Below are positions 5,246 to 43,226 of a stretch of DNA of 64,000 nucleotides, piece by piece (position 1 is the first letter of the stretch; every line of letters starts with the position of its first letter). The DNA is from Amphiscolops sp. MND2022 (lineage: Eukaryota), in contig OZ076413.1 of NCBI GenBank assembly GCA_964187785.1, positions 25,792,001 through 25,856,000 on the forward strand, given 5' to 3'. Below the pieces are notes generated by a model. The model was given only the letters and a program-made list of their open reading frames with translations. It did no database searches and had not been told where the DNA came from. The translations under genes and the position numbers were made by a program.

Positions 5246-5246
5246 T

Positions 5247-7030: not shown

Positions 7031-7039
7031 TGTTATTTA

Positions 7040-10859: not shown

Positions 10860-12151
10860 TTTCGGAGACATTTTTGCTTGGCGAACACTGACTGGCCAAA
10901 GTTTGAGTCTGGAAACTTTTGACACACCATTTGCTTCTCCACTACAATCGACATAACCTTAATAGTGGTTTACCTAGAAGACGCGAGTTCAAAGCCTTTA
11001 TTTACTTCTTTCCCTCATTCTACACGTGCTTCTGTTTGCAATAAGATTACAGCTATTTCCGGATTGTCCTTCAACAACAGATTTGTTCACATACTGGAAA
11101 AAGGCTTTCTGGAGAATCGTGTTGACATAATTTGTTGGTCCGACGTTATCAGCAATAACAATACCCCACACAAATAAAACGGAAAACAAACTCTCACAGT
11201 TGAAACGTTATTGAAAAATCTCAGCAAACATTCTCAGAAGTTTGCTGATAGTATTTACTGCCATAGGTTTGGGACTCCAAACAAATTGAGCAACTTAGAT
11301 TGCTGAATGAACTATTTTTTAACGTCATGAGAGATCAAAACGCAAACAAAAAACTGGAACCACAAACAAAAGTGACAAGCCAACCCCTTCGCTACTTTGG
11401 AACAAAATTTCATCACTAGAATTTTGAGGAAAACCCCTAGCATCTACTGTCTAGTATTGCAGAAACGCTGAAGACACGAGAAAACAAACCCATAACAAAC
11501 GAAGAAGAAAACTTGCTATTTTCGTTAGTCAGCTCAAGCTCTTGTTTTAGTGGGCTGGTTTCGACAGCTTTCAAGGTTTCATTACCTTGTAGTACAGTCG
11601 CATTTTTCTAATCAAGATGTTCCCCAGAACAAAAATTGTTGAACCACTTCAGCAGCTGACAAACAGAATGCCGCCTGTGGCTTATGTAACAGCATAGTTA
11701 CCTCATGATCCAGCGGAATCGAATATGCTGCTTCTGAAAGTTGGCTCCTCGAAAAGTGCTCTGTGCTAACGGAAGAAAACAATAAAGTAATTGACGGAAC
11801 ACAGTCCATACTTGCGTAAAATAATGCTCGTTTCCATAGAGTAAAAAAATCATGATGTCTGAAACCTTGGAATTAACTGGCAAAAATTGGACTCTTTATT
11901 GGAATCAACAGGATCAGGAAGTCTGGTAAAGACCGACATTGAAAAGACGACACCTCATGTGTCTCTACATTATCGACAGAAAGCAACCTCAAGCTATCAA
12001 AAGACCTATCCGCTCTACATCTGTCCATCAAAAAAGTCGCTCACGGAGTGGTATCAAAAACAGCTTTGTCATAGGCGCAGTTGAAAATATCGTCAACCTA
12101 CGCCACGGTTGCGTAGACAGCAACCCCTAATGTGGTCACTCAACATACAGC

Positions 12152-12154
<3 letters not shown>

Positions 12155-12196
<42 letters not shown>
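12155..12196. repeat. (AG)21 microsatellite inside the ORF1 remnant of LINE E
   Basis: Perfect AG dinucleotide run. Confidence 0.95.
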
Positions 12197-12199
<3 letters not shown>

Positions 12200-20040: not shown

Positions 20041-22187
20041 ATTAAGTTAGGGAATTTGTTCTTGATGGGTGATGAATCTGTAATGTTGATAATCTTCGCT
20101 AGTGAATTAGTCCTTGAGGGTGCTCGAGGCCAAAAGTTTAGTCGCATTTTTTCGCTGGTTTCTTTTGGAAGAACAAATTTATTTCTTCTTTTGCTTTGCT
20201 TTAAATGGTTAAAATCTTTGCATATTTACATCATATTGACCATCAATTATGTTTGATAACATCATCAATTTCTTGAGCTCGATAAAATAAGATATGGGTA
20301 AAATTCTCAGGGTTGACAATCTCTGTTTGTAGTCGTCTCCTTATATGATCCATCTGGTCACTCTAGAAATAAACTTTTTCAATATCCTCAATTCTGATTG
20401 TTTCGGACACCAAAAGTCTGAACCGAACAGTAGGGAAGGAATGACCATGGATTTGTATACTGGCAGCTTCGACTGAGTTGATGTATTTGATGCAGAATTT
20501 CTTCTTTCCATTCGATAGACTTTATGAGCTTTAGATAGTCTTGTCTCCAGGTGGTTGTTCCATTTCAAGCTATTTATAACGGGCCCTAAGTCCGCACATA
20601 CATCCGTACAGTTCTGGCTCAAATTCTAAAGATCCTTTGAGAATGAGATATTGGCACTTTTAGGCATTGAAAAAAAACATATTGCGCTCACTCTAAGTTT
20701 GAAGTTGGCATAATTCAGACTTTAAACTATTCGCTGGGTTGTTGGGTCCTGTGTACAAGAAAAAAAGGTATTCGGCAAACAGGTATCAAGAGAAATATAC
20801 AATATTATTCGGTAAGTCGTCGATAAATAACACAAAAAAGAATAAACCAAGAAAAGAACCCCGAGGAACCCTTTTTTTTCAAATTTACTGTATTCAGATA
20901 AAGCATCATCAATTTAGACCCCCATATAACGATTACAGAGATATGATTCAAGGAATTTATGAAGTTTGGAGTCGAGTTTTTTTATTTTTTTTGTTCAAAA
21001 GAAGGTCGTGTCTGCTTGTATCAAACGCCTTTTGGAAATCGAATGAGAAGAGTGTAACGCATTCAACATTCTGAATATTGGAAAATATCTCACTTAGTGT
21101 CATCATCAGTCTCAATAATAGTGATCTACAAGTTCTGAAACCATATTGTCGTTCCTGCATATGGGGGGTGGGTTCTAGATGTCCAATAATCGCTTCAATA
21201 CAATCTCAAAAGTTTTGCTACCAATGTTTGACAAATTTATTGGGCGATAATTTTCCACTGTTTGCTGCGAACCTTGCTTGAATACTGGAATCACTTTGAC
21301 TTCCTTCCATTTCAAAGGGAATAGAGTAGTTCGAACAATTTTAAAATAAACGTTGTAGAGCGAATGAATAAGTGTATCTGCCGTCCTAACATGCCATATA
21401 GGGGGATAGCATCATGGCCAACTAACTTCACTGCAATTTGATTTATCTCATCTCTGCAAATTTCCAAGTCGAAGGATCCCGATTCAGTGTATTTTGGCAT
21501 TGTTATTGCACTGGTTTCTCTATAAATAGTTGCAAAGTACTAAATTAGATCGTGCTTTAGAACTTCTTGCAGTCTCATCCCTCCATTCTAGGTGCGGCGA
21601 GATGACAGTGCGCTTTAGCTATCTGAAGTGTTCAAACATTAAGGAGCCATTTTTGGAGCAATTGCAATATCAATCTCTTTTTTTTTCTTGAGATTATAAC
21701 GGTTTCGCTTTGAAATACTGTTTGGTTGTTTCTGATACACTTTTTCGGCGGTGGAGAGTCTATTCATTAAATTCGAGGTACCAGGTGTAATCCATGGCAG
21801 GGAGATTTCTTCTGTGTTGCGTTCGCCCTGGGTGGTAGAATCCCGCTTTTCAGGAAGAAACCAAGCATACCATTCTTCAACTGTTTGGTCACAGTTGCTA
21901 TAACATTTGGCCATGAAAGGTTGTTCAATCAAAAGTGCATTCAACATGTCGTAATCACATCTGTTGGATGAATAACTGATAGGAGAAAGTGGGCTGGATT
22001 GGAAATCATGTCGAGTAGATAGCAAACTAACTGCGAAAGTTATGGCAAAATGAACTGATTTTCACAAGAATTCATAAATTCGCTATTGACTCGTGCAGCG
22101 TCTACACAGTCAGGGTCATTGACAAACACAAGATCCAGAGTGTTCCGCTTGGTGGTGAAGAAATCTATTACTTGTGTAAGGTTGAGT

Positions 22188-22544
22188 GGCTTGCTATATA
22201 GAGATCGAATTTCCGAGGTCGAATTGAATGAGGTCGAACGGAAAGAAGTCGACTACTTTAGTTGCATTACACAGCTCGAACGAACTGAGATCGAATTTGG
22301 TAGAACACGTCGGGTCGAAGTTTGTTATCCCATTTCTCGAATGGAAACAGCATTGCGCAACCCCGCATGTTTTTTGTAAAAGAATATAAAGTCAAGACTT
22401 CGATCCCAGACAGTCGCTATATTTCCGAAATTTTCACAATTCGACACGATTCAGTTGATCTTTTTCCGGAATTTTCACTGGTCGACCCGAGGACGTACCC
22501 TAGTTTTTGACGGCCTGATGGATTCGATCCGTATCCGCGCACCC
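22188..22544. mobile_element. Mutator-like MITE inserted in the APE domain of LINE B
   Basis: 9-bp TSD AGGTTGAGT at 22179-22187 and 22545-22553; imperfect TIRs; many TCGAA/TTCGA subrepeats; removing it restores APE ...DRLNLTQVIDFFTTKRNTLDLVF. Confidence 0.85.
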
Positions 22545-23729
22545 AGGTTGAGTCTATCCACTTCATCCAAGATCTCCTGTTCATACAGATCACTTGAAGT
22601 CATTGAAATCCAATATTTGTCTTTTTCATATTAAAATCACCCGTTATCATCTTGCAATCAGCTGTATGGTTATTAATGGCTTGAAAAAAGAGGGTCAACT
22701 CGTTTATAGGTAGACGGTACGTACTTTTATCAAGTGGTTTGTATAAAAAATCAATACAAATTGTTTTACTGTGCAGTTTTATTAACGCTGCAGCCGCACA
22801 TGAGACTTGTATTTCAGTGGGTAAAGTGTCTGGGGAATACTTGAGGTCTTTGTGGATTCCTATTAGAACTCCACCATGGGCAGTTGGGTTGGGTTTGCTT
22901 TCTTTTTCTGCTCGCATTAGGCTATATTGGGGTAAATGAATTTCGCCATCCATTATTACCTTTCTTAGCCATGTTTCTGTTAAAAGGCATATGTCTGGCA
23001 TGTATTGTAGATACAGGTGGAAACAATATGACGTCTATCGGCTAAGTATATACGTTGGCAATTGAATAATATAACTTCTAGCATGATATGTAGTCAATCA
23101 TTTCGTCCAGCTTGGATCTCATTTCCATCCTTTAACAGTTTTAGATTTCTTATCTTCAGCTGTTGTCGTTGAATTCCAGAATCGATAAGCTCTTTGCTTT
23201 TAAAGAGCAGAGTTCTTTCCACTTGTCTTTCCTCATATGTTAGTGAATCCGAAATGAATATTCGTTTTTCTGGAAAGTTTTTGTGCTCAAGTGTCTTTGC
23301 TAATATTTTCCTCACATCCCATGGGTTTTTGAGCGTCGCAATTAATGATCGTGGTCGCCATTTGAGAGGATCAAATTTTCCATACGTTGAATTCCGATAA
23401 CAGTTGGATTTTCACTGAGGAATTCCATGATACCGTTCACTTTTCTTTCTTCGCAGTTCAAAGTTTGTTCTTGCTCTTTCTTGGCCTCGAGTATACGTTT
23501 ATTTGTAAACAAGTATCTTCTTCCTGGAAAAACGCTTTATGAATGATTATTCCTGCGCTTGAAAATTGATGTTTGACAAGTTCCTCGTTACACTCTGACA
23601 TGTTTTTGATAATTGCTCAATCTTGTCATGAAGAGGTTTTATAGATGCTTCATTAGTCGAATCAACACATTCCTTAATGGAATCAATAAAAAGTTAGGTC
23701 CCACATGGTTGTTGTAGATCATACTCGAC

Positions 23730-24555
23730 CATGAATTTAATTGCAATATGCGTTATATCGCATGCGAGAGGGATATATTGCACGTTTTTTACAATAACGA
23801 TGTGTAAAATTTTGCTATCGCAATCTAAGCAATGCGATATATTTATATTTTATGCAAAAACTGATATATCGCATCATGTTTCTGCGATACTTCGCAAAAA
23901 GCGATGAAAATGCGTTAAATCGGGATATAGTAAACCGGCGTTACGAAGACCAGCGTATCGAGTAAAATACAGCGAGACAATTGAGAACTTTTTTTGAGAA
24001 ATTTCGGCATCAACATGAATAAGAATAAGTCTGTAAAATCATGCCTTTGTTGTGTTTTTTTTCAGACATATGAATGATTTCGAGAATATAAATTATGATG
24101 ACTTTAGCAATATCACTGATGAAGGGAACACAACTGACGATAGTGTGTTAGTCACAGGTTCAAATATAATGTCGCCAATTTGCATATGTTATCTGTCCAT
24201 GTGCGTATTGTATTGTATTGTAACGTAACATGCTTCATTGTCGCATTTGCAGTCTTAAGTTTATTGTTGTTGTCAAGGTTGTCTTATCAGTTGTTTAGTT
24301 ATTCAGGCAAGCTCAGCGGTATCCAATCGAAACTTTGATATATTAAAGTCCTTTTTTCAAAAAGTACGAAGCGAGCTTGAACTTTTGATATTTTAGAGGT
24401 TTTGCGTCTAAAGAGCGATAAATCATTGCAATGTTTTCAGAAAAAGGGATAGCGATAACGTTAACTTTTACTGAACTTCGCTTTGGCTGCGATGCGATGT
24501 TTTTTAGAACACTGCGATAGCGATGTTTGAAAAAAGCAATGTATCTAAATCCTTG
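23730..24555. mobile_element. hAT-like non-autonomous DNA transposon in ORF1 of LINE B
   Basis: 8-bp TSD TACTCGAC at 23722-23729 and 24556-24563; degenerate TIRs CATGAATTTA.../CAAGGATTTA...; clusters of GCGATA subterminal repeats. Confidence 0.8.
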
Positions 24556-25076
24556 TACTCGACCAGTTGTAAACAGGAATCGCAGAACCATAGGCATCCT
24601 TTGATTCTTCCGAGATGGGGGTACACTACTTTCGTCACGTCACTACAGGCCAGATGGAACCAGTTCATGAACTTTGAGCACTGTACTGCATGAGAGTTGT
24701 CGGACACACTGGTTGTACATTTTCCACAATGTGGGTTTTGCTTGGCAAGCGTCCCCGTCCACGTGTAGCATGTATTTTATCTCAAATCTATTAAGTATTT
24801 ATTTATGGTCGGGGAAGCGGAGAGTCATCATTGTTCTTGCCAATGCGAAAAAGATCCTCGATTTTGACTTTCACATTTAAACGAGTTTATTTCACATTGA
24901 CAAATGAGTTTATTTGACTAATCTCGTGTCCTTTATTAGATGTACATTCTCTTTTCCTTCAGAAATGCCTGTAACCATTATATCGTAGTCACAGTTATTT
25001 TCTTTGTCGGTAGAACTTCTCATTGGCGTAGCTCCAGGTTGAGAACGGTTACTCTCAGGGGATATCGTTGGCTTCG

Positions 25077-25102
25077 ATTGTTGTGATAAACTTATTAAAT
25101 AG
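25077..25102 (+). other. Spliced-leader-like motif directly fused to the ORF1 ATG of LINE G1
   Basis: ATTGTTGTGATAAACTTATTAAATAG immediately followed by ATG at 25103. Confidence 0.75.
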
Positions 25103-27270
25103 ATGAGATATGGTGGTGTGCCGATAGGAAGAAGCCCTAGTGGGTTTCAGAGGTCGTCCGAATATGACAGGGGAATCACGATGAAGAATGTACAACAAAT
25201 GACAAGGCATCGCAAAGCATTTGCAACAAGTGTGATGTGGAGGTACTAAATGGTCATTTGGCAATAATGTGTGACATGTGCTCTATATGGTTTCGTGAAG
25301 AATGTTCGGGTTTGTCCAAAAAGCAAATGAATGTCATCGGAGAGATCGACGCTTGCAAGTGGTTGTGTGGTTGTGTGGTTGGTGTCTGGACAATGTGGAT
25401 GATCGTCTCAAGTGTGTTTCTAACAATCTAGAAATAAAGAAGGACATCGAAGATATAAAAAGATTAGTAACCTCGTTTAATACCAATAAACCCACTTATG
25501 CATCCAAAGTTTCGGAAAAACCTCCCACTAATGTAAATGAAACTTGCACTGATAATCGTAACTATTCTGATGAACAAACACTGTACATTTCAGTCACAAT
25601 AGATGATGATATACTTTCTTCTAATGTATTACAAAAACGGAGGCTGTATACTCGTTTCCCCGGTATCAAACTTGATTTCACTTTTACCAACGAGCTTGGG
25701 GAGATTGTACTATTATTTAACAACAAATACTGTTGCACTAGAGTGAAAAACAAGTGGTGTTCGAATCTTCACGGACAGAAACTAGAGTTTTCCCACCGAA
25801 TGAAAGCAGATCAAATAAAGGTATAATCCGAGATGTGCCGATTGAAATTTCCACTATATATCAAAGGCGGAAAGGTCATACTTTTATTGGAATTAGTTTT
25901 CCAAAGAGAATGCACATTTAACGACTACCTTCAAAATGGATTTACGCTAGAGTATATGTTTTTCAAGATGGACCCAAAACGTACCACCAACGGATTGTTC
26001 AATGTTTCAACTGTCAACAATGGGGTAGCCATGTATCCAAAATTTGTAAAAACCAATCGTGGTGTGCCATCTGTGGCTACCAGCACCCAACACACCGTCA
26101 TAAAGAATATGTATGCCAGGAAAAGCATGAACAAGCAAAAGATTGTATCTCACCAAATGAAATCTACTCTGTCAATTGCGACAAGGATCACACAGCATTT
26201 GATAAAAACTGCTAATTGTACCAGGAAATATTGAAAACGTTGAACAGAGTCAACTCGTGATGAAACAATTTCTCTTAGCTATGAGTGTAAGTATTGCTGG
26301 TCTCTCCGCTCACTCGTGTATTGCTATAGATAAATATAAAAACGACAACAACATGAAAGTTATTAGGTCTCTGAAAGTTATGGAAATTATCTGGGTTTTG
26401 GTAACTACGACATCTACCGCGGCCAGTTAAGCAATCTTGGTTGCTCCTCATACACAAACAAATAATATCCTATGAAGTGAAAATAACACCCAGAGAAGGC
26501 GTTAATTGCTGTTTTGCAGCAATCTCTATTGAAAAAAGGAATTTTTCGCTGGGATCAATTTACGTACATTTAGGAAACAGTGAAAACATCGAAAGTGCCA
26601 CAGATGATCTGGCCGAAACGTATACGTTATAGAAAATTGAGAATAAAACCGGACCAATAATCTTCGGGGATTAGAATTCGGGGGATCCGCTATGGAGCAA
26701 CAAACTAGAAAAGAAATATGGTAAAATACTCGCCGACTACTGTGCCGAAATTAGTCTTTCTATAATAAGCCCTCACCAGCCCACTTTTGTCTCAGCAAGC
26801 GAGAAGGTAGCAGCAAAATCGATTTTTGCATCACTGAACAAAATTGCTCTGATCTGGTATACAATGCACGAGTGATCGAAGATATCGGTATCTTCTCTGG
26901 TGCTCCAGAGCAAGGTCATTGGCTTGTTCTATTTGATATAGATATTTCTGTGAAATATGATAATCCAAAACGGTGTGTGCTAAACTACGAAAAGGCAAAT
27001 TGGGAAGAAATAAGTATACAACTGGAAAATATTATGGTGGAGAACATGGATAGCATGATAACGGAAACACCTACGAAAGCTCTCTTAACATTCTTGGGCC
27101 TACTGAGAGAAGTTTGTGAAAATTCCATTCCACGAGAAACACTTCGTAAATATTCCAAACTATACTGGAGCAATAAATTGACTCACTTATCGAAAAAACT
27201 GAAAGATTCACCCAAAAAATACAGACTCCAATGTAACCCGAAAAACAAAAACCTTGTTGAAATGACAAAA

Positions 27271-28165
27271 GGTATTGATTACAAGACCAAATTTTTTCGC
27301 GCTTTTTCAATGCCAATGTGAAAATTTCGCTACGTTGAGCTGGAATCAAAAATTCTGCGAATGTGACCACTGATAATGTTCCGTTTGTACGTCATAGGGG
27401 CAGATGCTCTGACTGATAGTGATGTTCCTGTTTCGGTAGTCTTCGAATACTAACCTGTAGTAATTCTTCCACTGTTTGTTCTGATGTTCATGTCCAAAAA
27501 AGGCGATGTTCTGTTTTCCGGATCTTTCAATTGTAAACTTTAAATTAGGATGAAGCGTGTTGATTTTTTGCGACAGACCATCAATCTCGGATGTTCTTCC
27601 TGATTTAATTATGTCGTCCACGTACCTGGCAAAGAATTTTGAACGACCAGAGTCAGTTGTCTCGATCTGATCACACCCACAAGACCATTCGGAGTCTCAC
27701 CCGATGTCTTGATCTCGTTCAGAGACAAATTGGCATTTCCTGTGGAACCAACGATTGCAGGTGTCGCATTGTATTGATGAAACAGATGACAAAACCTTTC
27801 TACTGCAATTACCACAAATGTAATCTAAATGGGCAGTTAATGTAGCCAAATCACAATCTAACCGCATTTCGAACGATTTCACCCATATGTTCGCTAGAAT
27901 AACGGCCATTGACGCATTGACGCTCCCATCGCCACTCCGTCTTTTTGAACATTCCAAACGCAATCAGCTAGAAACCTTTACGTTTTTCACAAACAAAATC
28001 AACAAGACGTTAAAGGTGGAACGGGACAAATCTATGTCCTTTTTGTGACGAAACAAATGATTTACAGCCATGTCGATTGCTTCATCAACAGGTACAATTG
28101 TATACAAACCTTTTACGTCTAGCGAAATACTTTCGTCGTCTTCATCTAGAGTAACAGTGGTTTAT
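27271..28165 (-). mobile_element. Penelope-like (PLE) reverse transcriptase fragment with an embedded PHD finger
   Basis: Motifs in order: SLDVKGLYTIVP; QKDGVAMGAS/MAVILANIWVKSFE; CGNC..CDTC.RWFHRKC..WSCGC; ARYVDDII; INTLHPNLKFTIE; IAF(L)DMNI. This series is characteristic of PLE RTs. Frameshifted. Confidence 0.85.
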
Positions 28166-29539
28166 ATGGTCCAATAATAGCTCCTATAAAATCTTTTTTA
28201 TCGAATCGGAAAGTCAGTATTCAAGTCAATGATTATATCGACATGTCATTTGTCCCTCTTAGTGGTTTATCTCAGGGGGCTGTACTGTCACCACTTTTGT
28301 TTATATTCTATATGAAGGGCTTCCTCCAAGATGCAGACTTAACATATAAGTATTCAGATGACAGTACTTCTCTTTCCAGCAAAGAAAACCTAAGTACATC
28401 TTTAGAAAAGGCGGAAAACTATACATACAAATAGAGGCACGTGCTGAATAAAGACAAAACTGAACACATAAAGTTCTCAAACGAAGTATTTCGGTCCGAC
28501 TATAAATTTGTTGAGAGAAGTAGAATATTGGGCCTATGGTTTGAGCGAGAATTGAGTTTGAAAACACATGCTGCCATTATCTCTGCCTCAGTGGCTAATT
28601 TCTGGAAAGAAACTAATTTACTTATAACGCAAAGATTAAATCCATTTTACGCTGTCCGTATCTTTGATGCAAATGTGAATCCACGTGTAGCGTACTGTAT
28701 GATTACTTGGTTTCATCAAAACAAGACACCTCCGGACAAGATATGGTGGAGTGTTCATCAATCTATCTTTGGGATAAGAAACCACCAAGTATCGAAACAC
28801 GTAATTAGTGTTTTGAGTAATATTTGGCCTCCTTCTTTTTTTTTACACTAATCAAGTATTAAAGTTTCTACATTCAACTGCTAGAAGTGCAGATATTCTA
28901 AACCCAGGTAATTTAGCAATCATACCCCAACATATTAATATGGTGAGATTGTTTTTGGTACACAAACTTTCAGTTGTAAATCGTGATCCTGATGAAATTA
29001 AGGCAAAAACCATACTAATATGCTAGAAAATCCTCAGTCAAGACTTTTAGGAAGGAGGTGGAGGAGTATTTTAGGCACTTATGGCAACGAGAAACAAAGC
29101 AAAGTCTTATGTACTCAAATTTTTTCAGGGATCAAAGTAAGAAACAGCATCATGAAAATGCTAGCACCATATCCTAGGAAAATTTCTGTCAAAATGCTAT
29201 GTTTTCTATTGAATGATTTTGAAGTACGAGAAGTATTATTCAGAAGTAATAAGAGCAAAACCGATATTCGTCCCTATTGTAGAGTTGTCGATGATACTGC
29301 ACATTTCTTATTTTCCTGTGTCTTATACCAAGAACACCGAAGGAGTTTCATAAGGGAGCGTAAAAATCAAAAAATTGACGAAACGCTAGTTACTTTGCTA
29401 AATTGCGAAAACAAGCATGTCGTAAGGGCGGTGGCTGGCTTTATTGCAAGCATCGATAAATTCTTATAACCCTGCAATCCTCAGTTGCCTTCCTTCTGTG
29501 TCAATTCTGTTATGCTATTTTCTCCGCAGCTGACTAATT

Positions 29540-30110
29540 CTTGACAATTATGGGAATAAACTCTTTTAGCGTGTCTTCTAAATCTTTTCAAGATGTTTCA
29601 AATACGTTTTTCTCATCGTACCATGAAATACATCGAAGAAAAAGTAACTTAGCTTTCTCAACAACGGGCAAGATTTCTGGTTCCAAACCAGAGCATTCGT
29701 TGTGGTACCAGGAGTCGCAGGTGTCACATTGTACCCATTTCTCGTTTGGCCTTTCTTCGTTCTTGCATTTTGCATATTCGTTAGCATTGGAGGGTGTTTG
29801 TAGGCGTCCCTGTGTTTTAGTCCTTTTGACATTAGTCCAGTGATGTTCCAGTGGACCCGTAACGATTAATGTCCGAAGCTATTCAAGAAGTTTATAATTA
29901 CGAGCTGATCCGAGGGTGCATTCCTTCGTATTCGCTCCAAATGAAACTCAAAACAGAACAACAATTGATCGAGAGCAATACGACAGTCGGATATCGTTGG
30001 GGTTGTAAATAAGAATAAAAGCGGCTTATTGTATCCATGTTGAAGGCAAGCACAGCGGAAATATGATGTCCAGCTTGGCACCGGTATAAAGATGACAATC
30101 TATATCATCT
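29540..30110 (-). mobile_element. 5' fragment of another PHD-ORF1 LINE ('H')
   Basis: Minus strand reads EKWVQCDTCDSWYHNECSGLEPEILPVVEKAKLLFLRC at about 29630-29745; its CACTGGAACATCACTGG tract also occurs in the family A 5' UTR at 38122. Confidence 0.65.
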
Positions 30111-30339
30111 TAATTTTTTTATTCTATGTTTTTCCTCTATCAGATATCATGGATCTTCGTCATCAATCAAGTGCCATGTATATCAGCATGTTGGGGGGAG
30201 AAGACACACACCCGCGGTGTGCAACGAAAGTGGGGAACCACATACCAGCCACTATACCAGTAGACGAGTAACAATAAAAACAACCAACAAACTACTCAAA
30301 CCAGCCACTAAGCAGTCGACCGGTAGAACTTTTTATAAG

Positions 30340-32950
30340 CTGCTATGATATAAAGGTCAAAAAATTTAGGTTATATGTAATAAATTTCTTCGAACGCATC
30401 TCTGTCGCTAACAATTCTTAGAACACAGGCCGCATTGCCGATCTGAAGAGCCATTGAAATCCGTTGCTTCAAGAAGCTGCCAGCTCGTTGATCGTCGTGC
30501 GAACGATAGAGCATTTTACAGAGACGCGTGATGAAAATTTCACTGCTCTCGCCTAAAGAAACCTGTACTTCCAAGGCCACCGGCTGAAAAATGTAACCAT
30601 TGTCTATTAATTCGCGATACCTCTCAATTTTACGCGCTTCAGCCTCGGTGGCGGTGGTTCCCGGGTTGCATAAAGAACCTTGATTCAGGCAACTTGGTGC
30701 AAGAGCATCCACAATCGTGACATCCCACACCAGCTGTTTACCCATTTCCCAAGGAACCATGGTAACACCGTCTGAGCGTTTGTCAGCTGTTCGGTACAGT
30801 CCACGCGGTTCGATTATTGAAGGCAAGTCGAGAGATCCCAACGTCTGCTTTATGAGAGAATTGAGAGTAGCATGACGTGAGAAGCGACCAGCACTCTTGG
30901 TGCAAGAAAGACCGTGTAAACCGTCCCGTTCAACTCTTTTACCACAGTGGCACGTATGCGCAATGCAGATGTTGGTACCGAGACGCAAACCAATTGAAAT
31001 TCGATGTTGTTGATCATCAAGTTTCAGGCCTAGGTTCTTGCAAGGAACGATGTTCAGCCATTGAGACCCGAATTTACCTTGATGATCGTGGCAAATTTTC
31101 GAACGTTTCTCATCAATTCTAGAAATCAAGTCTTGGGCGGTTTTGACGAAGACAGGTTGTGTCCAATTTTTCTGGGTTCCATCGAGAAGACTTTCCTGTT
31201 CATTCGTCAAACTCAACCATTTCTCTAGAACTTTTGTAAGTGAAACATCTTCCAATGTTTCCGAGAAAATCGCCGTGAGAAAATCACTCGCACCAAAAGC
31301 TGAGCTGAGGCCAAAAGGCGGGAAGTGCTAATAATGATGCGGATGAAACCCCAAGACCACCCATCTCAGCAGGCAGAGCCAGCTGAGTACTCGAAATATC
31401 GTCGATGTTCACGTTGCACACTTTGGAAAGCTCGTCGCGGACGGTTTTGTCATATTTCTCCAAGAGAGTTGGATGATTAAAATATGTACTGGTTCTCAGG
31501 AAGTACAACAACTTTGGCAAACTGAAGCAATTTTTCAACATAATAGAACAATAGTGCGCATCTAGTTTTTCGACAATACCGTTAACTTTTTCCAGTTCAA
31601 TAATTTTCTTTTCCAAAAGGTCTGCTTGTGATTTCGAGCCGAGCGGTGAACCAAGAAAGATAAGTTCATCTTTCTTTGCTGTTTTGATCCCGGAGCAAAG
31701 TTTTTGGAAAGATGCTAAAATTGTCGATCGTCTTTTTTCAGTGATGTCACCAGGGAAAAATTTTCACATTTCGTGGGTTTAATTTTGAGTCCCAGCGTTC
31801 TTTCGGCATCAATATTTTTTTTTGAGATCTTTCCAAACGGTTCGGCAATCATCACTTAAATTTCCATCGTCTAGATACCATAAGTTTATTTTCGACTCCA
31901 AACTGTCAATCAGATCCTGAATGGAATCCGAAAACAAAGCAGGAGACTCAGGATCTCCTTGCTGGGTCCCTTCACAAGATTTGATTACTCAATCACCGTA
32001 AAAAAGAAAACTTGGCTGACTGTACGCCGAGTGTGAATACTTATAAACTTCAGGGTGTATTTCAAAAACTTTCTCTAGCATGAATTGCCGGTTTATCGAA
32101 TTGAAAGCGTTTTCAAAGCCAATTTTCAAAATTACGTTTTCTTTGGGCTTAGGGCTTTCTATCAAACAACGGAAAACATGTGAAGCCAATTGGGTAGACG
32201 GAAGTCAGTCGGAGGAACGGGATCGAAAATCAGAGTTAGTCCTCAGGTCGACATATCAAATTTTTGAATGGGATCGAAACAACTCGCATCGAAATTTTTA
32301 CAACGTAGTAAGGCAGTGTACGCCTTTGATCTAATTGCTCGGGTCTAATGGAAATAGATCTAACTGTTAGGTCTAACTTTCAGATCTAATTTTATCTAAA
32401 AAACTTAGGTCTAACCCCTTTATGATCTAATATGTGTTCTGAAAGCGAAAGTATAATGTGGGGGATATGCGGTGCATGCACGCTCGCCCTCACCGTCGCA
32501 GAGACCAGCTCCCACTACCATCGCTTCGCGATCTCCGTTCCCGCTAGGTCTTTGCTCCTGTTCGACATCGCGTAGCAAGATGTGCATATAAGCGACCCCA
32601 AGGGGCCGCGGGGCTCTAGAGGAACTAGGGACATATCCGAGGCACGTTTATACTTTATCTCACTTTTTAGTTTTAGATCCTAATTGACTATTTTTTTTCT
32701 CAAATTAGTTCAAATTAGAAGAAATTTTTAGAACTGATTATTTAAATCAATTTATTTAGATCTCAATTTTGCCCCCTCTCTTAGATCTATTCGACCTTAT
32801 TACAGCCACCCAGGCCAATTCAGCGTCCCTTTTGGTGCCTACACCTACTTGTCGATTTCCATATCTTGCTTGACGTGATTCGAACACATGGTATCCGGCA
32901 CATTTTGCGGACAATCGGCGGAAAGTGTTGCCTATAGCGATAGGACGAAG
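30340..32950 (-). mobile_element. CRE-clade-like non-LTR retrotransposon (RT, CCHC knuckle, restriction-like endonuclease), 5'-truncated and decayed
   Basis: RT LRPIAIGNTFRRL (about 32900-32945), QVGVG, FENAFNSINR, GTQQGDPESPALF, WYLDDG; ORF 30371..31255 has CHC...HGLSC, RH, KRSDG, WDVT, AEARK..RY and QRISMALQIGNA, the RLE signature. Confidence 0.9.
32192..32811. mobile_element. Composite Mutator-like MITE inserted in the CRE RT
   Basis: TSD AAGCCAATT (32183-32191) vs AGGCCAATT (32812-32820); ends GGGTAGACGGAAGT... and ...TTACAGCCACCC; interior filled by a second, TAGATCT-rich element; excision restores RT ...DAELASHVFR. Confidence 0.85.
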
Positions 32951-32957
32951 TACTCCA

Positions 32958-32985
32958 TAATTGTTGTGATAAACATATTAAATAG
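32958..32985 (+). other. Spliced-leader-like motif directly fused to the ORF1 ATG of LINE G2
   Basis: TAATTGTTGTGATAAACATATTAAATAG then ATG at 32986; upstream flank is unrelated CRE sequence. Confidence 0.75.
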
Positions 32986-35900
32986 ATGATATATGGTGGT
33001 GTGCCGATAAGAAGAAGCCCTAGTGGATTTCAGAGATCGGCCGAAGATGACGCGGGGGGATTCACAAGGCAGAATGTACAACAAATGACGAGGCATCTCA
33101 AAGCATTTGCAAGAAATGTGATGTGGAGGTCCTAGATGGTCAATTAGCAATGTTGTGTGACATGTGCTCTATATGGTTTCATGAAGAATGTTCGGGTTTG
33201 TCCAAGAAGCAATTAAATGTCATCGGAGAGATCGACACCTGCAAGTGGTTCTGTGGTTGGTGTCTGGACAATGTGGATGATTGTCTCAAGTGCGTGTCTA
33301 ACAGTCTAGGAATGAAGAAGGATATCGAAGATATAAAAAGATTAGTAACCTCGTTTAATACCAATAAACCCACTTTTGCATCCAAAGTTTTGGAAAACCC
33401 TCCCACTAGCGTAAATGAAACTTGCACTGATAATCGTAAATATCCTGATGAACAAACACTGTACATTTCAGTCACAATAGATGATGATATTCTTTCTTCT
33501 AGTGTATTACAAAAACGGAGGCTGTATACTCATTTCCCCTGTATCAAACAGGATTTCAATTTTACCAACAAGCTTGGAAAGATTGTACTATTATTTAACA
33601 ACAAAGGCTGTTGTACTAGAGTGAAAAACAAATAGTGTTCGAATCTTCTCGGGACAGATACTAGAGTGTTTTCACCCAATGAAAGCAGATCACATAGGGG
33701 TATAATCCGAGATGTGTCGGTTGAAATTTCCACTGATGACATCAAGATTGTTTTAGCTGGCGAAAAAGAGGAAGAATTTCGAGTGATCCGACATATCAAA
33801 GGCGAAAAGGCCATACCTTTAGTGGAACTGGTTTTCCAGAAAGAATGCACATTTAACAAATATCTTCAAAATGGAATTACGCTAGAGTATATGTACTTCA
33901 AGATGGACCCAAAACGTACCAGCAAACGGATTATTCATTGTTTCAACTGTCAACAATGGGGTAGTCATGTATCCAAAATTTGTAAAAACTAATCATGGTG
34001 TGCCATCTGTGGCTACGAGCATCCAACAAACCGTCATAAAGAATATGTATGCCAGGAACAACATGAACACACAAAAGATTGTATCCCACCAAATGAAATC
34101 TATTGTGTGAATTGCGGCAAGCATCACACAGCTTTTGACCAAAACTGCGAAATGTACCAGGAATTGTGGAAAAAGTTGAACAGAGTCAACTCGTGGTGAA
34201 ACAATTTCTCTTAGCTATGATTATAAACATTGCTGGTCTCTCCACTCACTCGTGTATTGCTATGGATAAATATATAAACGACAACAACATAAAAGTTATT
34301 ACGATCTCTGAAAGCCATTGAAAGATTCAGGGTTTTGGAAACTACGATATCTACCGCGCCCATTCAAACAAACTTGGTTGCTCCTAGCTCATACACAGAC
34401 AATTAAACGCCTATGAAGTGAAAATAACACCAGAGAAGGCGTTGATTGCTGTGTTGCTGCAATTTCTACTGGAAAGAGCAATTTTTTGCTGGGATCAATA
34501 TACGTACATTTAGGAAACACTGAAAACATCGAAAGCGCCACAGATGTCCTGACTGAAGTGTATACGTTATGCAAAAATGAAAATATAACCGGACCAATAT
34601 TCTTCGGGGATTGGAATTCGAGGCATCCCTATGGGGCGATAAATTAGAAAATAAATGTGGTAAATTACTTGCCGACTACTGTGCCGACAATAGTTTTTCT
34701 ATAATAAGCCCTCACCAGCCCATTTTTGTCTCAGCAAGCAAGCAAGGTAGCAGCATAATCGATTTTTGCATCACTGAACAAAAGTGCTCTGATCTGGTAT
34801 GCAATGCACTAGTGATCGAAAATATCGAATACTTCTCTGGTGCTCCAGAGCAAGGTCATTGGCCTGTTCTATTTGATATAGATATTGCTGTGAAATATGA
34901 TAATCCTAAACGGTGGGTGCTAAACTACAAAATGGCAAATTGGGAAGAAATAAGTATACAACTGGAAAATATTATGGTGGAAAACATGGATATCACGATA
35001 ACGGAAGCAAGTACGAAAGCTCTCCTAATATTTATGGACCTAGTGAGAGGTGTTTGTGAAAATTTGTTTCCACGTAAAACAGTTTGTAAATATTCCAAAC
35101 CATACTGGAGCAATAAATTGACTCACTTATCGAAAATACTGAAAGATTCACGCAAAAAATACAGACTCCAATGTAACCCGAAAAACAAGAACATTGTTGA
35201 AATGGCTAAAATCGAATTCAAAAAGGAAATGAAAAAGAATAATGTCCGTTGGACGCAAATTGGCATTATGTAAATGAATGAGGATTTTTCGATAATATCC
35301 GCAAACTCAATGGCTCAATGGACCTAAATAACATAGGAGTACTTCGTCACAAGGGTAAGACACTGGAAAAGGATTGCCATAAAGCTGCGCTCTTTCAACG
35401 TATTTTCTTCGATGGTGCACACTTTACTGGTAAACTAATTGACGACGCTTTTTATGAAAAAACAAAAGAAGAAGTGAATGAAAAAGTAGCTCACACCGTT
35501 GGGGATTATTACAAGGAGGAGGTCAAGGATGGTCTAAACATGCGTATTACAATGGATGAACTTAAACAAGCCATAATGAAAATGAAGACAAACAGCAAGG
35601 GCGTGGATCCTTATGGCCTTCATTCTAAACTAATGAAGAACTTCAAATTTAACACCATTAACATAGGTTAGCACTTGATAAACAGTGCATTCTTCAAGGG
35701 GATTTGGCCATTCGATAAAACCATAGTCAAACTCTTGAAAAAGTCTGGCAAAACTGAATATTTTAATCCATCTTCATGGAGACCTATTTCACTTACATCC
35801 CATTTGGGAAAGTAGTTGAACGACTGATAGATAGAAGACTAAGATCATCAGCTATACTCGACATTGATGAGCAATAATTTGATTCTCAGCCAGGCAAGTC

Positions 35901-37346
35901 AACTTTGCACTATTTACACAAATTATAACATGATATCTTAGCAATGAAAAATTTACCAATAGCAACAGTATAAGATCTAGAGAAAGCTTTTGGCTCCGTA
36001 GATCAAATTTTTTGCTAAGCAAGCTAATAAACAGTGGTTTAAATGGGCCAATGTTAGCTACTATAAAATCTTTTTTATCGAATCGGCAAGTCAGTATCCA
36101 AGTCAATGATTTTATCGACATGTCATTTGTCCATCTTAATGGTTTACCTCAGGGTGCTGTACTGTCATCACTTTTGTTTATATTTTATATGAAGGGCTTC
36201 CTCCAAGATGCGGACTTAACATATAAGTATGCAGATGACAGTACTACTCTGTCAAGCAAAGAAAACTTAAGCACATCTTTAGAAAAGGGGAAAAACTATA
36301 CATACAAATGGAGGCAGGTCCTGAATAAAGACAAAACTGAACATATAAATTTCTCAAAAGAAGTATTTCAGTCCGACTATAAATTTGTTGAGAGAAGTAG
36401 AATAATGGGCCTATGGTTTGAGCGGGAACTGAATTTCAAAACACATGCTGCCATTACCTCTGCCTCAGTAGTTAATTTCTGGAAAGAAACTAGTATACTT
36501 ACAACGCAAGAATTAAATCCATTTTACGCTGTACGTATCTTTCATTCATATGTGAAACCACGTGTAACGTACTGTATGACTATATGGTTTCATCAAAATA
36601 TGACATCTCTGGACAAGATGTGGTGGAGTGTTCATAAGTCTATCTTTGGGATAAGAAACTACTAAGTATCGAAACACGTAGTTAGTGTTTTAAGTAATAT
36701 TTGGCCTCCTCCTCTACTCTACACTAATCAAGTATTAAAGTTTCTACATTCAACTGCTAGAAGTGCAGATATTCTAAACCCAGGTAATTTAGCAATCATA
36801 CCCCAACATATTGATATGGTGAGATTATTTTTGGTACACAAACTTTCAATTGTAAATCGTGACCCCGATGAAATTAAGGCATTATACAAATATTATGCTA
36901 GACAATCCTCAGTCAGTACTTTTAAGAAGGAGGTGGATGAGTATTGCAGACACTCATGGCAACGAGAAATGAAGCAAGGTCTTATGTACTCAAATTACTC
37001 AGGGCTTAAAGTAAGAAACAGCATCATGAAAATGCTTGCACCGTATCCTAGGGAGGTTTCTGTCAAAACGCTACGTGTTCTAATGAATGATTTTGAAGTA
37101 CGCGAAGTAATATTCAGAAGTAAAAAGAGCAAAACCGATATTTGTCCTTATTTTAGAGTTGTCGATGATACTGCACATTTCTTATTTTCCTGCGTCTCAT
37201 ACCAAGAACACCGAAGGAGTTTCATTAGGGAGCTTCAAAATCAAAACATTGACGAAACGGTAGTTGGTTTGTCAAATTGCGAAAACAAGCATGTTATAAA
37301 CGCGTTGGCTGGCTTTATTGCAAGCATGGATAAATTCTCATGGTAA
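32958..37346 (+). mobile_element. Decayed full-length LINE 'G2' (I/Jockey-group-like)
   Basis: Leader then ATG at 32986; PHD (33123..), knuckle CFNCQQWGSHVSKIC, APE (GDWN, SIIDF, GHWPV), RT WRPISLTSHLGK, DLEKAF, GLPQGAVLSSLLFIFY, YADD, C-terminal CCHC-like region to the stop at 37346. Confidence 0.9.
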
Positions 37347-38235: not shown

Positions 38236-38823
38236 ATGGTTTATCTAATAGGAGCAAGTTCACTCTATCGAGTCTTTAATTCTTCACCTTACTCTTTCAG
38301 ATCTACAATTTATAAAAAATCTACAGCCATCCCTGGATTATCCCTGAACCCAAATTCAAACAATAGATTTAAAGATCTTGGTTTCTTACTGGAAAGAGGC
38401 CAGTTGAGAGATAGAACCGATCTTGTTTGTTGGCACGACGTTATTAATAACAGTATTACAGAACATAAATCAAACGGAAATAAAGCCCTCACCGTTGAAC
38501 AGCTTTTGCCGATCCTGAAAAAACATTTCCATAAATTTGCTGCTATCATCTACTGGCAGAGATTCAGCACTCCCAACATTCTCGAAGAACTGCGAACGCT
38601 AAACATCCTTATCATCGACGTCAAGAAAAAATTTCTGTCCAAGCGCAAGCAGAAAACACCAAAAATCACCTCTGAACTACAAAATGTTCACCCCTGGCCC
38701 GAATTGGAGCGCAACTTTATCACCACTATCCTCAAGAAATCCACAGATCTCTACAGCCTAGTTCTACAGAAAACCCAGAAAAAAGAAGAAAGCCTAATTG
38801 AAAAGTTAGAACTTTTTCCTTAA
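38236..38823 (+). CDS. ORF0 of LINE A: intact 195-aa SGNH/GDSL-hydrolase-like protein
   Basis: VYLIGASS resembles block I (GDS), AIPGL block II, WHDVINNS block III and NVHP block V; homologous remnants at the same position in LINEs E, F and A'. Confidence 0.65.
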   Translation: MVYLIGASSLYRVFNSSPYSFRSTIYKKSTAIPGLSLNPNSNNRFKDLGFLLERGQLRDRTDLVCWHDVINNSITEHKSNGNKALTVEQLLPILKKHFHKFAAIIYWQRFSTPNILEELRTLNILIIDVKKKFLSKRKQKTPKITSELQNVHPWPELERNFITTILKKSTDLYSLVLQKTQKKEESLIEKLELFP

Positions 38824-38896
38824 TTCTTACTTAAGAGTACGGCGACAGCTTTTGAGGTTTAGTTACCTTGGAGTATTTGTCGTGCACTTAGGTAAG

Positions 38897-40227
38897 ATGC
38901 CATCCAAAAACAAAAAAGACCGCACAGTATCAGCAGCAGATCAAAACCCGGACGACTGCGGAACTTGTAACAATGCAGTACTATCTGGAACAAGTGCCGT
39001 CGAATGTGCTTCTTGCGTGCGCTGGTTTCATCAGAAATGCACCGAACTCGCTGAAGAAACTATTAAAGCGATAGATGGTTACAAATCGATTCAATGGTAC
39101 TGTAATGATTGCCTGCACTCCGTTAGAAAATTTCTACGCCCTAAAGGACTGGAAGCAATAGACCAAAAACTGGATACACTCATCGAGTCAAACCGACAAC
39201 ACCAAAAAAGTCTCTCGGCAACAATAACCAAAGTTGACAACGCAACAAACGTTACAACTGTTTCAACGGAGAGTATCACGAAACTTTCCAATGACTTGTC
39301 TGCATTATTACCAGCAATAAACAAAGTTGCACACGGACTTGCACCCAAAATTAGCTCTGTCAAAGACGCTGTTGAGAAAATGACGTCAACGTATGCCACA
39401 GCCAAAAATAAAGGAGCAGCAATACAAACAGAAACGTGCACCATAACAACCAAACCCAGAGATGTCAACGGAGTTCTCATTATCGAGAATGCACATCCTA
39501 CCTTCAGAAACAGCTCTGATATAAAAAGAAGCTTCCCCAAAGCCTTCCCCAAAAAGAAACTACTATATGCCTTCAGAACCACCAGAGGGCATATCCACCT
39601 GGAATTTGAAACACACGATGAATCCAAAGAGATTGAAGATGCATGGCGGTCAAACTTCTTGGGTAAGGACACGGTCTGTCGCAGGCCAAGAACGCTTCAG
39701 AAAAACTTCTCAGTCATAATAAAAGATGTCCCGAAAGAAGACAATTTTACAGACACAAACATATCTTCTTCACTACAAGCAAACTTCCCTGGAGCAAAAG
39801 CTAGAAGATTCATTAAGAGAGACAGCACCATTCTGAACACAGTGAAAATAGACTTCAGGTGCCATAAAGACATAGAAGCCGTAGTTAGAGACGGTTTGTT
39901 TCTAAATGATCAGTTCTTTCGTGCATATGAATTTGAAGAAGAAGTGAAAATCCCAATTGTCCGATGTTATAACTGCCAGAATTTTGGACACATAGCTAAA
40001 ACTTGCAGAAGCCCCCAAAATGCTCTAACTGTTCTGGACCACACAGCACAAGTGAGTGCGACAAAACGAAAGATAGAAAATGTGCGAATTGTCAATCAAA
40101 TCACTATGCTAATGACCCCAACTGTGAAGCATATCTGAATCATGCATCGAAAGTGTACAATCAAAAAAACATTCCGATACCAAACTACCTTCAAGATAAA
40201 TTACACTCGCTCAAGTGGAATGGCTAA
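38897..40227 (+). pseudogene. ORF1 of LINE A: N-terminal PHD finger, coiled coil, central domain, three zinc knuckles; one frameshift near 40015
   Basis: First ATG 38897; CGTC..CASC.RWFHQKC..WYCNDC; CYNCQNFGHIAKTC, CSNCSGPHSTSEC, CANCQSNHYANDPNC; stop TAA 40225-40227 overlaps the ORF2 ATG at 40220. Confidence 0.9.
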
Positions 40228-43026
40228 CAAAAATTACGCTAACATCCTGCAGCTTAACGTAACCGGCATGTCATCTGCCAAACAATTACTTCTAAACAAA
40301 TACATAGACGACGCCGGGGCAGATTTCATTGCACTGAATGAAACAAAAAAGGAATTACCTGAAACTTTTTTCATTAACCATCGAACTTTCTCACAACAAC
40401 AAACACACAACCAAGGATGAGTCTCTCTCTCACTACCAAAAGAAACAAGCTGCTTTGAGATACACGATCTCCAGAGTAAGAATTTCGACTCCGTCTGGTG
40501 CGCAGTAAATTTTCACAACCTGTCTTTTCTGCTCGCAACTGCTTACATCCCTCCCATCGCAGACACCAAAATGAAAGAATTCCTCAGCACTCTTGACAAA
40601 GCGAGATCCTTGGCAAAATTGATTAACATGGAAGGTGTTCTTTTTGTTGGGGATCTAAACGCCAGGAACCTACTGTTGGAAGACATCCGAAACAACTCCA
40701 GTGGCTCACTTCTGGAACAGTACATCGAGGAGGAGAGTGTTGAAATCCTGAATGATGGGCAACCAACGTTTTACTCAATCAACGGAAGTTCAGTAATCGA
40801 TCTATTCATGACAACGGAAGAGCTTTGCGGAAGGAAAACAACAATGTACACGGATCTCGACACAGAACTTCTCACTGGCTATCCGAACAGGGGACATGTC
40901 CCAGTGTTTGCTAATTGGGAACTCAACCACTCATCACAGGACGGAAAAGTCACCAAATTTGATCCCGAAAATACTGACTGGCAAAATTGGCAGAGTATAT
41001 TGGAAGAGAAAATGAACAGCTTTACGGACCCAAACAACCTGTTGTACAAAGACCCGAACGTCGCTTGGCGGAAAAGGAGATTCATTCTTGAAGAAGTGAA
41101 TCAGTTATGTCTCAATACGAAAGTCATCAGTAAGCACAGCAAGCCATTTTGGACAGATGTCCTGACACAGCTTAGCAACAAGGTCGGAGCACTCAACAGA
41201 CCTTCAAAAGAACTTCGACACTGCAAAATCATGCCGCATTGACATCAGCTAGACTTCGATTCAAACAAGAACTCAGAACAGCGGCATCTAACTGGACTTC
41301 TTCCAAACTCAAAGAAATAAACAATGCAAAACATGGTATTTCATTTTGGCGAAACATTCAGAAGGTATTCCCCAACAAAAAAGACCACATGGTAGCCCCT
41401 TTGAGATCACAATCCGGACTGTGTTTCGATGAGCCAGATAAAGCAAAATTACTGCTCAACACGTTTTTTAGCGGTAGCCATCTGAAAGAAGAAGAATTTG
41501 ACGGAGAGTTTGAAAACCTTGTGGATGATCAAATGCGATATTTTGATTTTTTAGAATTTACAGACAGTAATGCGTACTCCAGCTTATGGTTCAATGAAGC
41601 TGTTGAAAGACATGAACTGGACGAGATCATTGAAAAACTACGAAACCTGAAATGTAACAGCGACGATGACAAGATCCAGCCGAAGATGGTCATCATATCT
41701 GGAAATAAATTCAGAACCTGCCTAATCAACCTCTTCAACTCTTGCCTCAGATCTGGAGCCTGGCCTTGGACAGACACTCGCGTTTTTTTCATTAAGAAAC
41801 CCATGAAAGCTGACTACAGCAACCCATCTGTCTACAGGCCAATTTCAATCAGCAGCCATATAGGAAAAGTCTTCGAAAGAATACTCAACTGACGTCTAAT
41901 GCGCTACATGCTCTCTGAAAAACTAAATGCGACCTCCTAAAGAAGAGCAAATTATGTGCAGCTCTCATAAATCTAGACTTAGAGAAGGCTTTCGATAGCG
42001 TTTGGCACAATGGCCTGCTGCTGAAGCTATGGACAGCAGGAATACGAGATTCACTCTTTAATCTCTTTCGGAATTTTCTCAAATGCCGATTGATACGAAC
42101 AAAACTGGATGGAGTGTTGAGCTCGCCCATTAGGCCAAAACAGGGAGTTCCGCAAGGAAGCGTACTCTCACCATTGCTTTTCATATTTTTCATCGCAGAA
42201 ATGTTGAAGAATACTGATGGGACTAAATTCAAATATGCGGACGTTTCTCAGATCCTTGTGTCTGCGGAAACACAAGCCTCCCTCTGCAAACAAATTCAGA
42301 AGAACTTGAATTCGGAGAAAACATGGTGCAGCACATGGCGAATTCAAATAAACGGATTGAAAACCGAGATAATGCCCATTCACCCACTGGATATCTGGGA
42401 CCACAAGTTTCATCTGGGAACAGAGAAATGCGAAGTCAAATACCAAACGAAAATTCTCGGCTTGATCGTAGACAACGAATGTTCATTTAAACAACACACA
42501 GATTCAACAACAGCACGTTGCCTGAACGGGTGGAGAGAACTGAGATATCATTGCACAGGCAAATGGGGTCTATCGAGACACACCCTTACAGTTATGTACA
42601 AAACATTGATCCTATCGGCCTTACTATACTGCACACCTGTATGGGCGAGTCAAAACATTACTAAATTAACTAATATTTAACATACGATTACCCGCAGCAT
42701 AATGGAAACCAGATACAATGCAAACTCGGCAGCAGCTGAAGTTCTTTTGGGTATTCCACCCATAGACATACTGTGCCAAAACATATCATCGAAATTTTTA
42801 ACTAAAGTTCTACAAAGTAATGATCATATGACAAATCAAATAATAGAAAATGGATCAGACTTAGCGTTTCTTATGAGCCATAGAAAGACGTTGAGACAAT
42901 TTCACGGCAGAAAGACATTAAACCTACGCGACAAGCTAAGCTACGATGAAGAAACGAGTAGAAATCACATTCTTAGGCAATGGAATTAAAGATGGCAATA
43001 TCCGGACTTCGATACAAATCTCAAAC
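40220..43026 (+). pseudogene. ORF2 of LINE A: APE endonuclease and reverse transcriptase, disrupted
   Basis: ILQLNV, FIALNET, GDLNA, SVIDL, GHVPV; YRPISISSHIGKVFERI, LDLEKAFDSVWH, GVPQGSVLSPLLF, YADV instead of YADD; stops at 40418, 41890 and 42678, and a deletion removing the QxGFR motif. Confidence 0.9.
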
Positions 43027-43226
43027 NNNNNNNNNNNNNNNNNNNNNNNNNNNNNNNNNNNNNNNNNNNNNNNNNNNNNNNNNNNNNNNNNNNNNNNNNN
43101 NNNNNNNNNNNNNNNNNNNNNNNNNNNNNNNNNNNNNNNNNNNNNNNNNNNNNNNNNNNNNNNNNNNNNNNNNNNNNNNNNNNNNNNNNNNNNNNNNNNN
43201 NNNNNNNNNNNNNNNNNNNNNNNNNN
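43027..43226. other. Assembly gap (200 N)
   Basis: Run of N. Confidence 1.

Follow-up and report, generated by a model that had tools for sequence, protein, structure and literature searches.

The window, as we call the whole 64,000-nucleotide stretch of Amphiscolops sp. MND2022 DNA analysed here, very probably contains the broken fossil of a Penelope-like element (PLE) reverse transcriptase (RT), which lies antisense within a LINE, was later duplicated together with it, and derives from a deep clade of PLEs with an inherited PHD finger inserted between RT motifs B and C. An earlier sequence-only reading of this DNA had proposed that the PHD finger is a native, in-frame domain insertion within the RT. 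This central inference, as opposed to a secondary insertion of LINE ORF1 sequence, is supported by the intact ORFs of relatives, by the bimodal spacing between the RT motifs, by the single origin of the insert, by its invariant zinc ligands and by the overlay of the RT core predicted with AlphaFold.

A decayed PLE reverse transcriptase interrupted by a PHD finger

The minus strand of positions 27150-28300 was read in three frames and the positions of the motifs were computed from these translations; all peptide strings quoted in the sequence-only reading were found there. The ends of the fragment were set by comparison with a PLE-free copy of the host LINE (35211-36030) and by LINE contigs that cease to match the window at 27264 and 28153. 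The fragment and its parts are:

27271-28152, minus strand: decayed internal fragment of a PLE RT of the PHD clade (882 bp, motifs A to E)
28099-28128, minus strand: RT motif A (RT3), ISLDVKGLYT, from the frame translation and aligned with relatives
27918-27947, minus strand: first half of RT motif B (RT4), QKDGVAMGAS, from the frame translation
27868-27909, minus strand: second half of RT motif B (RT4), MAVILANIWVKSFE, from the frame translation
27673-27816, minus strand: Pygopus-like C4HC3 PHD finger, CGNC..CDTC..WFHRKC..WSCGC, from Pfam PHD, a profile of PLE PHDs and alignments; its ends are CGNC at 27805-27816 and WSCGC at 27673-27687
27607-27630, minus strand: RT motif C (RT5), ARYVDDII, with the catalytic aspartates, from the frame translation
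27526-27552, minus strand: RT motif D (RT6), HPNLKFTIE, from the frame translation
27483-27500, minus strand: RT motif E (RT7), FLDMNI, past another frameshift
from motif E to about 27297, minus strand: start of the thumb, from the match to the relative P0271

The fragment corresponds approximately to residues 384-665 of P0271, an intact relative of 851 aa (tblastn, 44-52% identity, E 3e-64), and is devoid of the N-terminus with its DKG region, of most of the thumb and of the GIY-YIG nuclease. An 8-bp sequence (CATTGACG) that is duplicated in tandem, at 27907-27914 and at 27915-27922, splits motif B and shifts the frame, a TGA stop lies inside the PHD finger at 27697-27699, and more frame breaks are found in the intervals between motifs A and B and between motifs D and E. 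The segment is a dead PLE RT fossil with no function of its own. The insert had been described as joining motif B in frame, which is correct for the second half of the motif but not for the first half, separated from it by the 8-bp duplication. A single frameshift had also been thought necessary to reach YVDD. This proved mistaken: in this copy (copy 1) the second half of motif B, the PHD finger, YVDD and motif D are all read in the same frame, of which the above-mentioned TGA is the sole break.

The presence of a PHD finger between motif B and YVDD was confirmed with profile searches. Using only the part that precedes the stop, the finger scores 25.1-26.5 bits against Pfam PHD (PF00628), above the cut-off of 24 (E 2e-5 to 6.5e-6), and the window PHD reaches 47.5 bits (E 8e-14) against a profile of PLE PHDs taken from other genomes (hereafter the PLE-PHD profile).

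The LINE/PLE chimera and its duplication

The surroundings of the fragment are composed of a LINE and of several duplicated segments:

25077-29464, plus strand: abundant LINE, host of the antisense PLE fragment; it encodes an ORF1 PHD, an endonuclease of the AP type and an RT
20109-31955 and 43227-55118: arms of a segmental duplication (about 12 kb, 98%) that carries the LINE/PLE chimera
50431-51316, minus strand: PLE copy in the segmental duplicate, with 12 substitutions and a 4-bp AGTC insertion relative to copy 1
38470-43026 and 64000-59448: arms of an inverted duplication
55118-56616 and 57183-58677: arms of a direct duplication

The antisense PLE fragment of 882 bp stands in place of 818 bp of LINE ORF2, the N-terminal half of the LINE RT. 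A third copy of the LINE in the window (32960-37338, about 89% identical) is free of PLE sequence; it aligns with copy 1 up to 27270, resumes at 28153, and possesses 818 bp of its own RT sequence at 35212-36029. We also compared the locus with contigs from four public sequencing runs of the same organism. The LINE flanks are matched by hundreds of contigs, which come from other copies of the LINE and continue as LINE past 27264 and 28153, and the PLE part is covered by just one to three contigs. These contigs include one further PLE copy, about 91% identical, in which motifs C and D are present along with the N-terminal half of the finger, whereas the variable C-terminal PHD loop is swapped for other sequence. 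A few bases of possible microhomology are seen at the LINE/PLE joints of 27271-28152. Template switching, insertion accompanied by deletion, or repair with filler DNA may each have produced this replacement.

The sequence-only reading had treated 50431-51325 as a second copy, in which the supposed frameshift was best seen. The frameshift in question is the copy-specific 4-bp AGTC insertion, a form that is also present in the contigs. Since the PLE copy lies within the segmental duplication, it does not constitute independent evidence; every lesion but one is common to both copies, and because the duplicate has all the other lesions of copy 1, the fragment was already dead when it was duplicated.

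The window is more generally made of large and recent (98%) direct and inverted segmental duplications, and one arm of a direct duplication starts immediately after a gap of N at 43027-43226. An intact ORF of 294 aa (30371-31255, minus strand), for which there is no Pfam family on record, probably belongs to another retroelement.

Intact relatives share the same architecture

An 88-aa piece joining motif B to the PHD finger, used as the query of a HMMER search, retrieved 110 proteins, about 40 of which align over the tail of motif B plus the PHD. An unbroken A - B - PHD - C - D - E order is found in P0034 and P0039. When the search was seeded with P0034, about 30 relatives annotated with a PHD covered more than 90% of the query, whereas hundreds of ordinary PLEs aligned over about 47% only, with the alignment breaking at the insert. 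The PLE-type homologues, which number in the hundreds, bear RVT_1, HTH_animal and GIY-YIG domains.

Intact ORFs among the cluster members are 812-880 aa long, and ORFs of 850-880 aa have the architecture RT(1-4)-PHD-RT(5-7)-GIY-YIG. Five of them (P0233, P0250, P0266, P0271 and P0278; 850-880 aa) display, in this order, Pfam RVT_1 (from profile position 1 to about 140-143), PHD and GIY-YIG. For P0297 (880 aa) and P0252 (812 aa), RVT_1 followed by PHD is detected with no Pfam GIY-YIG match at E 0.01; a GIY-YIG/CCHH pattern is nevertheless recognisable by eye at the C-terminus of P0297. The HMM searches suggested in the earlier reading recover all three domains in five intact relatives, as well as a PHD above the Pfam cut-off in the window. 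The single open frame from RT through PHD to RT and GIY-YIG that it had envisaged exists in the natural intact ORFs and not in the window copy, which is dead and has no GIY-YIG domain.

The PHDs of the relatives score 27-30 bits against Pfam PHD. Full-length relatives (P0233, P0271, P0266 and others) end in a C-terminal GIY-YIG domain (Pfam) with a CCHH pattern visible by eye, and a DKG motif is found in P0271 (PFDKGCGF, at about residue 250). In eight PHD-clade and nine PHD-less relatives the linker before the GIY-YIG domain contains no Cys pair. Since a CCHH nuclease that is not preceded by a CX2-5CxxC linker points to the Penelope/Poseidon type, both sets of relatives appear, by these motifs, to be Penelope/Poseidon-like.

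One of the loci examined (L004, from assembly ERZ25074608) carries at 2027-7582 at least three head-to-tail intact P0271 ORFs of 851 aa separated by spacers of 187 nt, an arrangement typical of PLEs. In another (L002, from ERZ25071359) the full-length P0233 ORF is flanked on both sides by a tandem satellite of 174/185 bp (1-5200 and 7850-12571), an arrangement reminiscent of the association that has been reported for PLEs with tandem arrays of non-autonomous 'retrozymes', although no hammerhead was detected. Hammerheads were searched for in three PHD-clade PLE loci, two of them with full-length ORFs: Rfam models gave no match in L001 and L002 at the gathering score, nor in L002 (3000-10000) and L004 at E up to 1, although hammerheads of the minimal PLE kind may be missed by such models. 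The L004 spacer contains a CUGAUGA...GAAA string, which was considered as a candidate and rejected, as no convincing fold could be drawn by eye.

Single origin and range of the PHD clade

The distance from GxxMG to RYxDD is bimodal: it measures 30-39 aa in 91 PLEs and 90-125 aa in another 50, and no value falls between these ranges. The lower mode is that of ordinary PLEs, and the insert, of about 70 aa, is made of a PHD of about 50 aa plus linkers. In a tree of 101 non-redundant RT sequences, built after removal of the insert columns, the 14 PHD bearers occupy one side of a branch with an SH-aLRT support of 100, so that the distribution of the insert takes one change, and none of 500 shuffles did as well. 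The window fragment was placed with X at each break and with the insert left out; in a quick PMSF tree it falls inside the PHD group, as sister to P0271 (support of 97, and 100 for the clade). Across this clade the PHD insert is inherited, in frame and with conserved zinc ligands, and the surrounding RT core is unchanged. The PHD-bearing PLEs form a recognisable and apparently undescribed clade.

The survey of related genomes that had been suggested located members of the clade in six ENA assemblies (ERZ25074608, ERZ25071359, ERZ25878734, ERZ17082352, ERZ17092181 and the Tara Oceans assembly ERZ907786) and in the acoel Symsagittifera roscoffensis (XP_063722202.1, GCA_963678635.1). The 294-aa ORF of the window (30371-31255) is found identical in ERZ25074608, an assembly that also contains P0001 and P0271, so that the organism of the window is most probably the home of the intact 851-aa P0271 element as well. 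A feature search of the ESM Atlas with the P0271 junction pointed weakly (score 0.76) towards an RVT_1+PHD cluster, one member of which is cnidarian, a lead that carries no weight in our conclusions; with a small piece as the query, the same kind of search returned generic PHD clusters only.

These data bear directly on the proposal that the PHD was gained secondarily from a LINE ORF1, for example by template switching, in this copy or in a very recent ancestor of it. The window is indeed full of Pygopus-like LINE ORF1 PHDs, the best of which is 48% identical to the PLE finger over 33 aa, and the PLE fragment lies, as one component of a LINE/PLE chimera, within a LINE that bears a PHD. However, an equivalent insert is present in frame and at the identical position in intact ORFs of at least six other assemblies, at RT divergence down to about 42%, and the single origin of the insert on the RT tree is at odds with a recent capture. 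Furthermore, the host LINE's own PHD is located 2.4 kb away, on the opposite strand, and is only about 33% identical to the PLE finger. The insert shared by relatives, the motif spacing and the RT tree together refute a recent LINE ORF1 capture, to which we leave a vanishingly small probability. The findings named beforehand as speaking against a native domain were not encountered: relatives do carry the PHD, it is in frame, and it is not a recent LINE ORF1 insertion.

Predicted structure of the insert

Residues 322-705 of P0271 were modelled with AlphaFold2 from an alignment of 76 rows. The model has a mean pLDDT of 89.4 and a pTM of 0.84, and the 10-residue blocks of the insert reach 89-93. 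In the model the insert is made up of a pair of short linker helices, a small beta sheet and short helices, after which the motif C hairpin follows. Within the RT palm, the insert occupies the loop that connects the helix of motif B with the YVDD hairpin of motif C. Foldseek identified retron, TERT and group II intron RTs as neighbours of the model in the PDB. In the ESM Atlas, a search by shape retrieved PHD-less PLE RTs of arthropods and nematodes, with 305 of the 384 residues aligned at 2.8-3.0 A. By its PLE-type motifs and these neighbours, the RT is closer to those of PLEs and TERT than to LINE or LTR RTs. About 79 residues are left unaligned in this overlay, approximately the size of the insert, which argues that the RT core was not remodelled. 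The structure prediction proposed in the earlier reading supports a native insertion, both by the confidence of the predicted insert and by the overlay of the core with PHD-less PLE RTs.

The turn that leads from the B helix to the C strand is situated on the outer face of RT palms. Because of this general topology, we infer that the PHD finger would be directed away from the template-primer cleft.

Kind of PHD finger and conservation of contact residues

Seventeen PLE PHDs, which share 31-42% identity, have ten invariant positions (7 Cys, 1 His and 2 Trp). Among solved structures, the clade PHD profile matches Pygopus best (E 3e-11, 46.2 bits), followed by MLL1 PHD3, KAT6A, BPTF and TAF3, and precomputed Pfam marks also include PHD_Pygo. 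The LINE ORF1 PHDs of the window score 40-51 bits against the PLE-PHD profile. As they match it as well as Pygopus does, the PLE, LINE ORF1 and Pygopus fingers all represent one PHD subtype. The top non-PLE matches of the profile are the LINE ORF1 PHDs at 38810-40135 (plus strand; 48.6 bits) and 63247-63660 (minus strand; 51.5 bits), to be compared with 47.5 bits for the truncated PLE finger of the window and 46.2 bits for Pygopus. The ancestor of the clade may have obtained its PHD from a LINE ORF1 by an ancient capture. The PHD-only matches of the HMMER search belong to mixed families (Helitron-associated DUF6570, LINE endonuclease, SWIB proteins and multi-PHD proteins), and no donor was identified among them.

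In hPygo1, the cage for K4me2 is formed by W366, Y341 and D352, with V350 and A356 at its base, T3 touches I357, and the binding face of Pygopus is acidic (PMC2726290). The PLE fingers resemble the Pygopus PHD (PDB 2dx8, 2vpe and 2xb1) in having a C2-C3 loop of the same length, 12 residues, and in retaining contact residues: the equivalent of W366 is W in all of them, that of V350 is V or L, and that of I357 is I, V or F. A second aromatic residue is found in most members at the position of Y341 or D352, and some are without it; the window copy has a Tyr of the Y341 type. Unlike the Pygopus PHD, the PLE fingers conserve neither the EVND/D352 lip nor E360, which contacts the N-terminus of H3 in Pygopus, and are not known to have a BCL9-type partner. 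Their loops contain many Arg and Lys residues (VTYRG, RRG, HRKC), and the region past the fifth Cys is the most variable part of the finger.

Putative role of the PHD finger

In active elements the PHD finger would project from the back of the palm and bind the tail of histone H3. Such binding could hold the particle of RT, nuclease and RNA on nucleosomal DNA during target-primed reverse transcription (TPRT) or, alternatively, bias the choice of the integration site. Because the contact residues are kept but E360 is lost and the loops are basic, reading of the H3 tail by a finger projecting from the palm is put forward as the leading interpretation and not more, at a probability that we place a little short of even. 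The more specific view that a methyl-lysine/H3 reader in the RT palm docks the polymerase on marked nucleosomes, so that chromatin would steer where TPRT starts, is possible as well, although we regard it with more doubt.

The PHD could be native and yet be something other than a histone reader, namely a zinc module that, as other Cys/His motifs of PLE proteins may do, binds nucleic acid, be it target DNA, template RNA or the primer, or else one that merely stabilises the palm. PLE nucleases already employ CCHH and CX2-5CxxC zinc motifs that are thought to help target recognition (PMC8557442), the insert adjoins the catalytic hairpin, and the basic loops of the PLE fingers differ from the acidic binding face of Pygopus (PMC2726290). 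Conversely, the cage tryptophan of the WxH motif is invariant, the equivalents of V350 and I357, typical of H3-tail binders, are retained, and the nearest solved PHD relatives are all histone readers; we thus consider a purely nucleic-acid-binding or structural module somewhat unlikely. A role in protein-protein contacts, either for multimerisation of the RT or for recruitment of a host factor, may be imagined by analogy with Pygopus, whose PHD contacts BCL9 HD1 through its rear face. Pygopus PHDs, the nearest solved relatives, do bind BCL9 by a second surface, and the frequent occurrence of PLE copies in tandem or inverted arrays has prompted ideas of dimeric action (PMC8557442). Yet the region that corresponds to the BCL9 face, past the fifth Cys, is precisely where the PLE fingers vary most, and in the 91% identical copy from the contigs that same region is replaced altogether, which makes such contacts distinctly improbable.

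Comparison with known elements

The PHD-bearing elements resemble canonical PLEs with a C-terminal endonuclease (Penelope/Poseidon) in their RT motifs, DKG motif, GIY-YIG domain with CCHH, tandem copies and RT core overlay. They differ from them in that about 70 aa, PHD included, are inserted after RT4(B) and before RT5(C), and by their position on a long, fully supported branch. In the survey of PLEs by Craig et al. (2021), PHD insertions were reported in just five Chlamys families of Chlamydomonas, where they lie between RT2a and RT3(A) or within the nuclease, and canonical animal PLEs were described with CCHH and CX2-5CxxC motifs only (PMC8557442). Chlamys PLEs likewise have a PHD, presumed to be chromatin-related, within the PLE polyprotein. 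They are however algal elements with an N-terminal endonuclease, whereas the clade described here is an animal one with a C-terminal endonuclease and a PHD located at RT4(B)-RT5(C), beside the catalytic hairpin. Outside Repbase, the full-text literature searched contained no description of an animal PLE whose PHD lies in the RT4(B)-RT5(C) interval.

According to the account given in PMC8557442, PHD fingers of ORF1 proteins of CR1-like LINEs were described by Kapitonov and Jurka (2003). The PLE fingers share their Pygopus-like subtype; but the LINE PHD is a module of a separate ORF1 protein, while that of the PLEs is a loop in the polymerase, and identity to the PLE finger of the window does not exceed 48%.

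The usual view of RT cores is that they are compact and do not accept foreign domains. The 'a' insertions of group II intron and non-LTR RTs include one between motifs 4 and 5. TERT and Naiad RTs contain an insertion-in-fingers domain (IFD) between RT3(A) and RT4(B) (PMC8557442). The PLE insert is comparable to both in that loops between RT motifs tolerate added structure; the IFD and the 'a' insertions are, however, helical extensions of the polymerase, whereas the PLE insert is an autonomous and widely used reader domain.

The window copy itself adds only a fossil and a LINE/PLE chimera. Through its relatives, the PHD accessory domains already known from the algal Chlamys PLEs are seen in animals too and at a new, intra-catalytic site, in a clade found in marine animals, an acoel included. 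In elements with intact ORFs, an autonomous reader domain has long been carried beside the YVDD hairpin of a telomerase-related RT. To our knowledge, integration targeting by chromatin readers has so far been associated with the integrase chromodomains of LTR elements and not with the RT core. An H3 reader borne by the palm, if its activity proves true, would thus represent a targeting principle new for the RT core. The PHD clade offers a testable route to chromatin-guided retrotransposition, as well as a tolerated insertion site for RT engineering.
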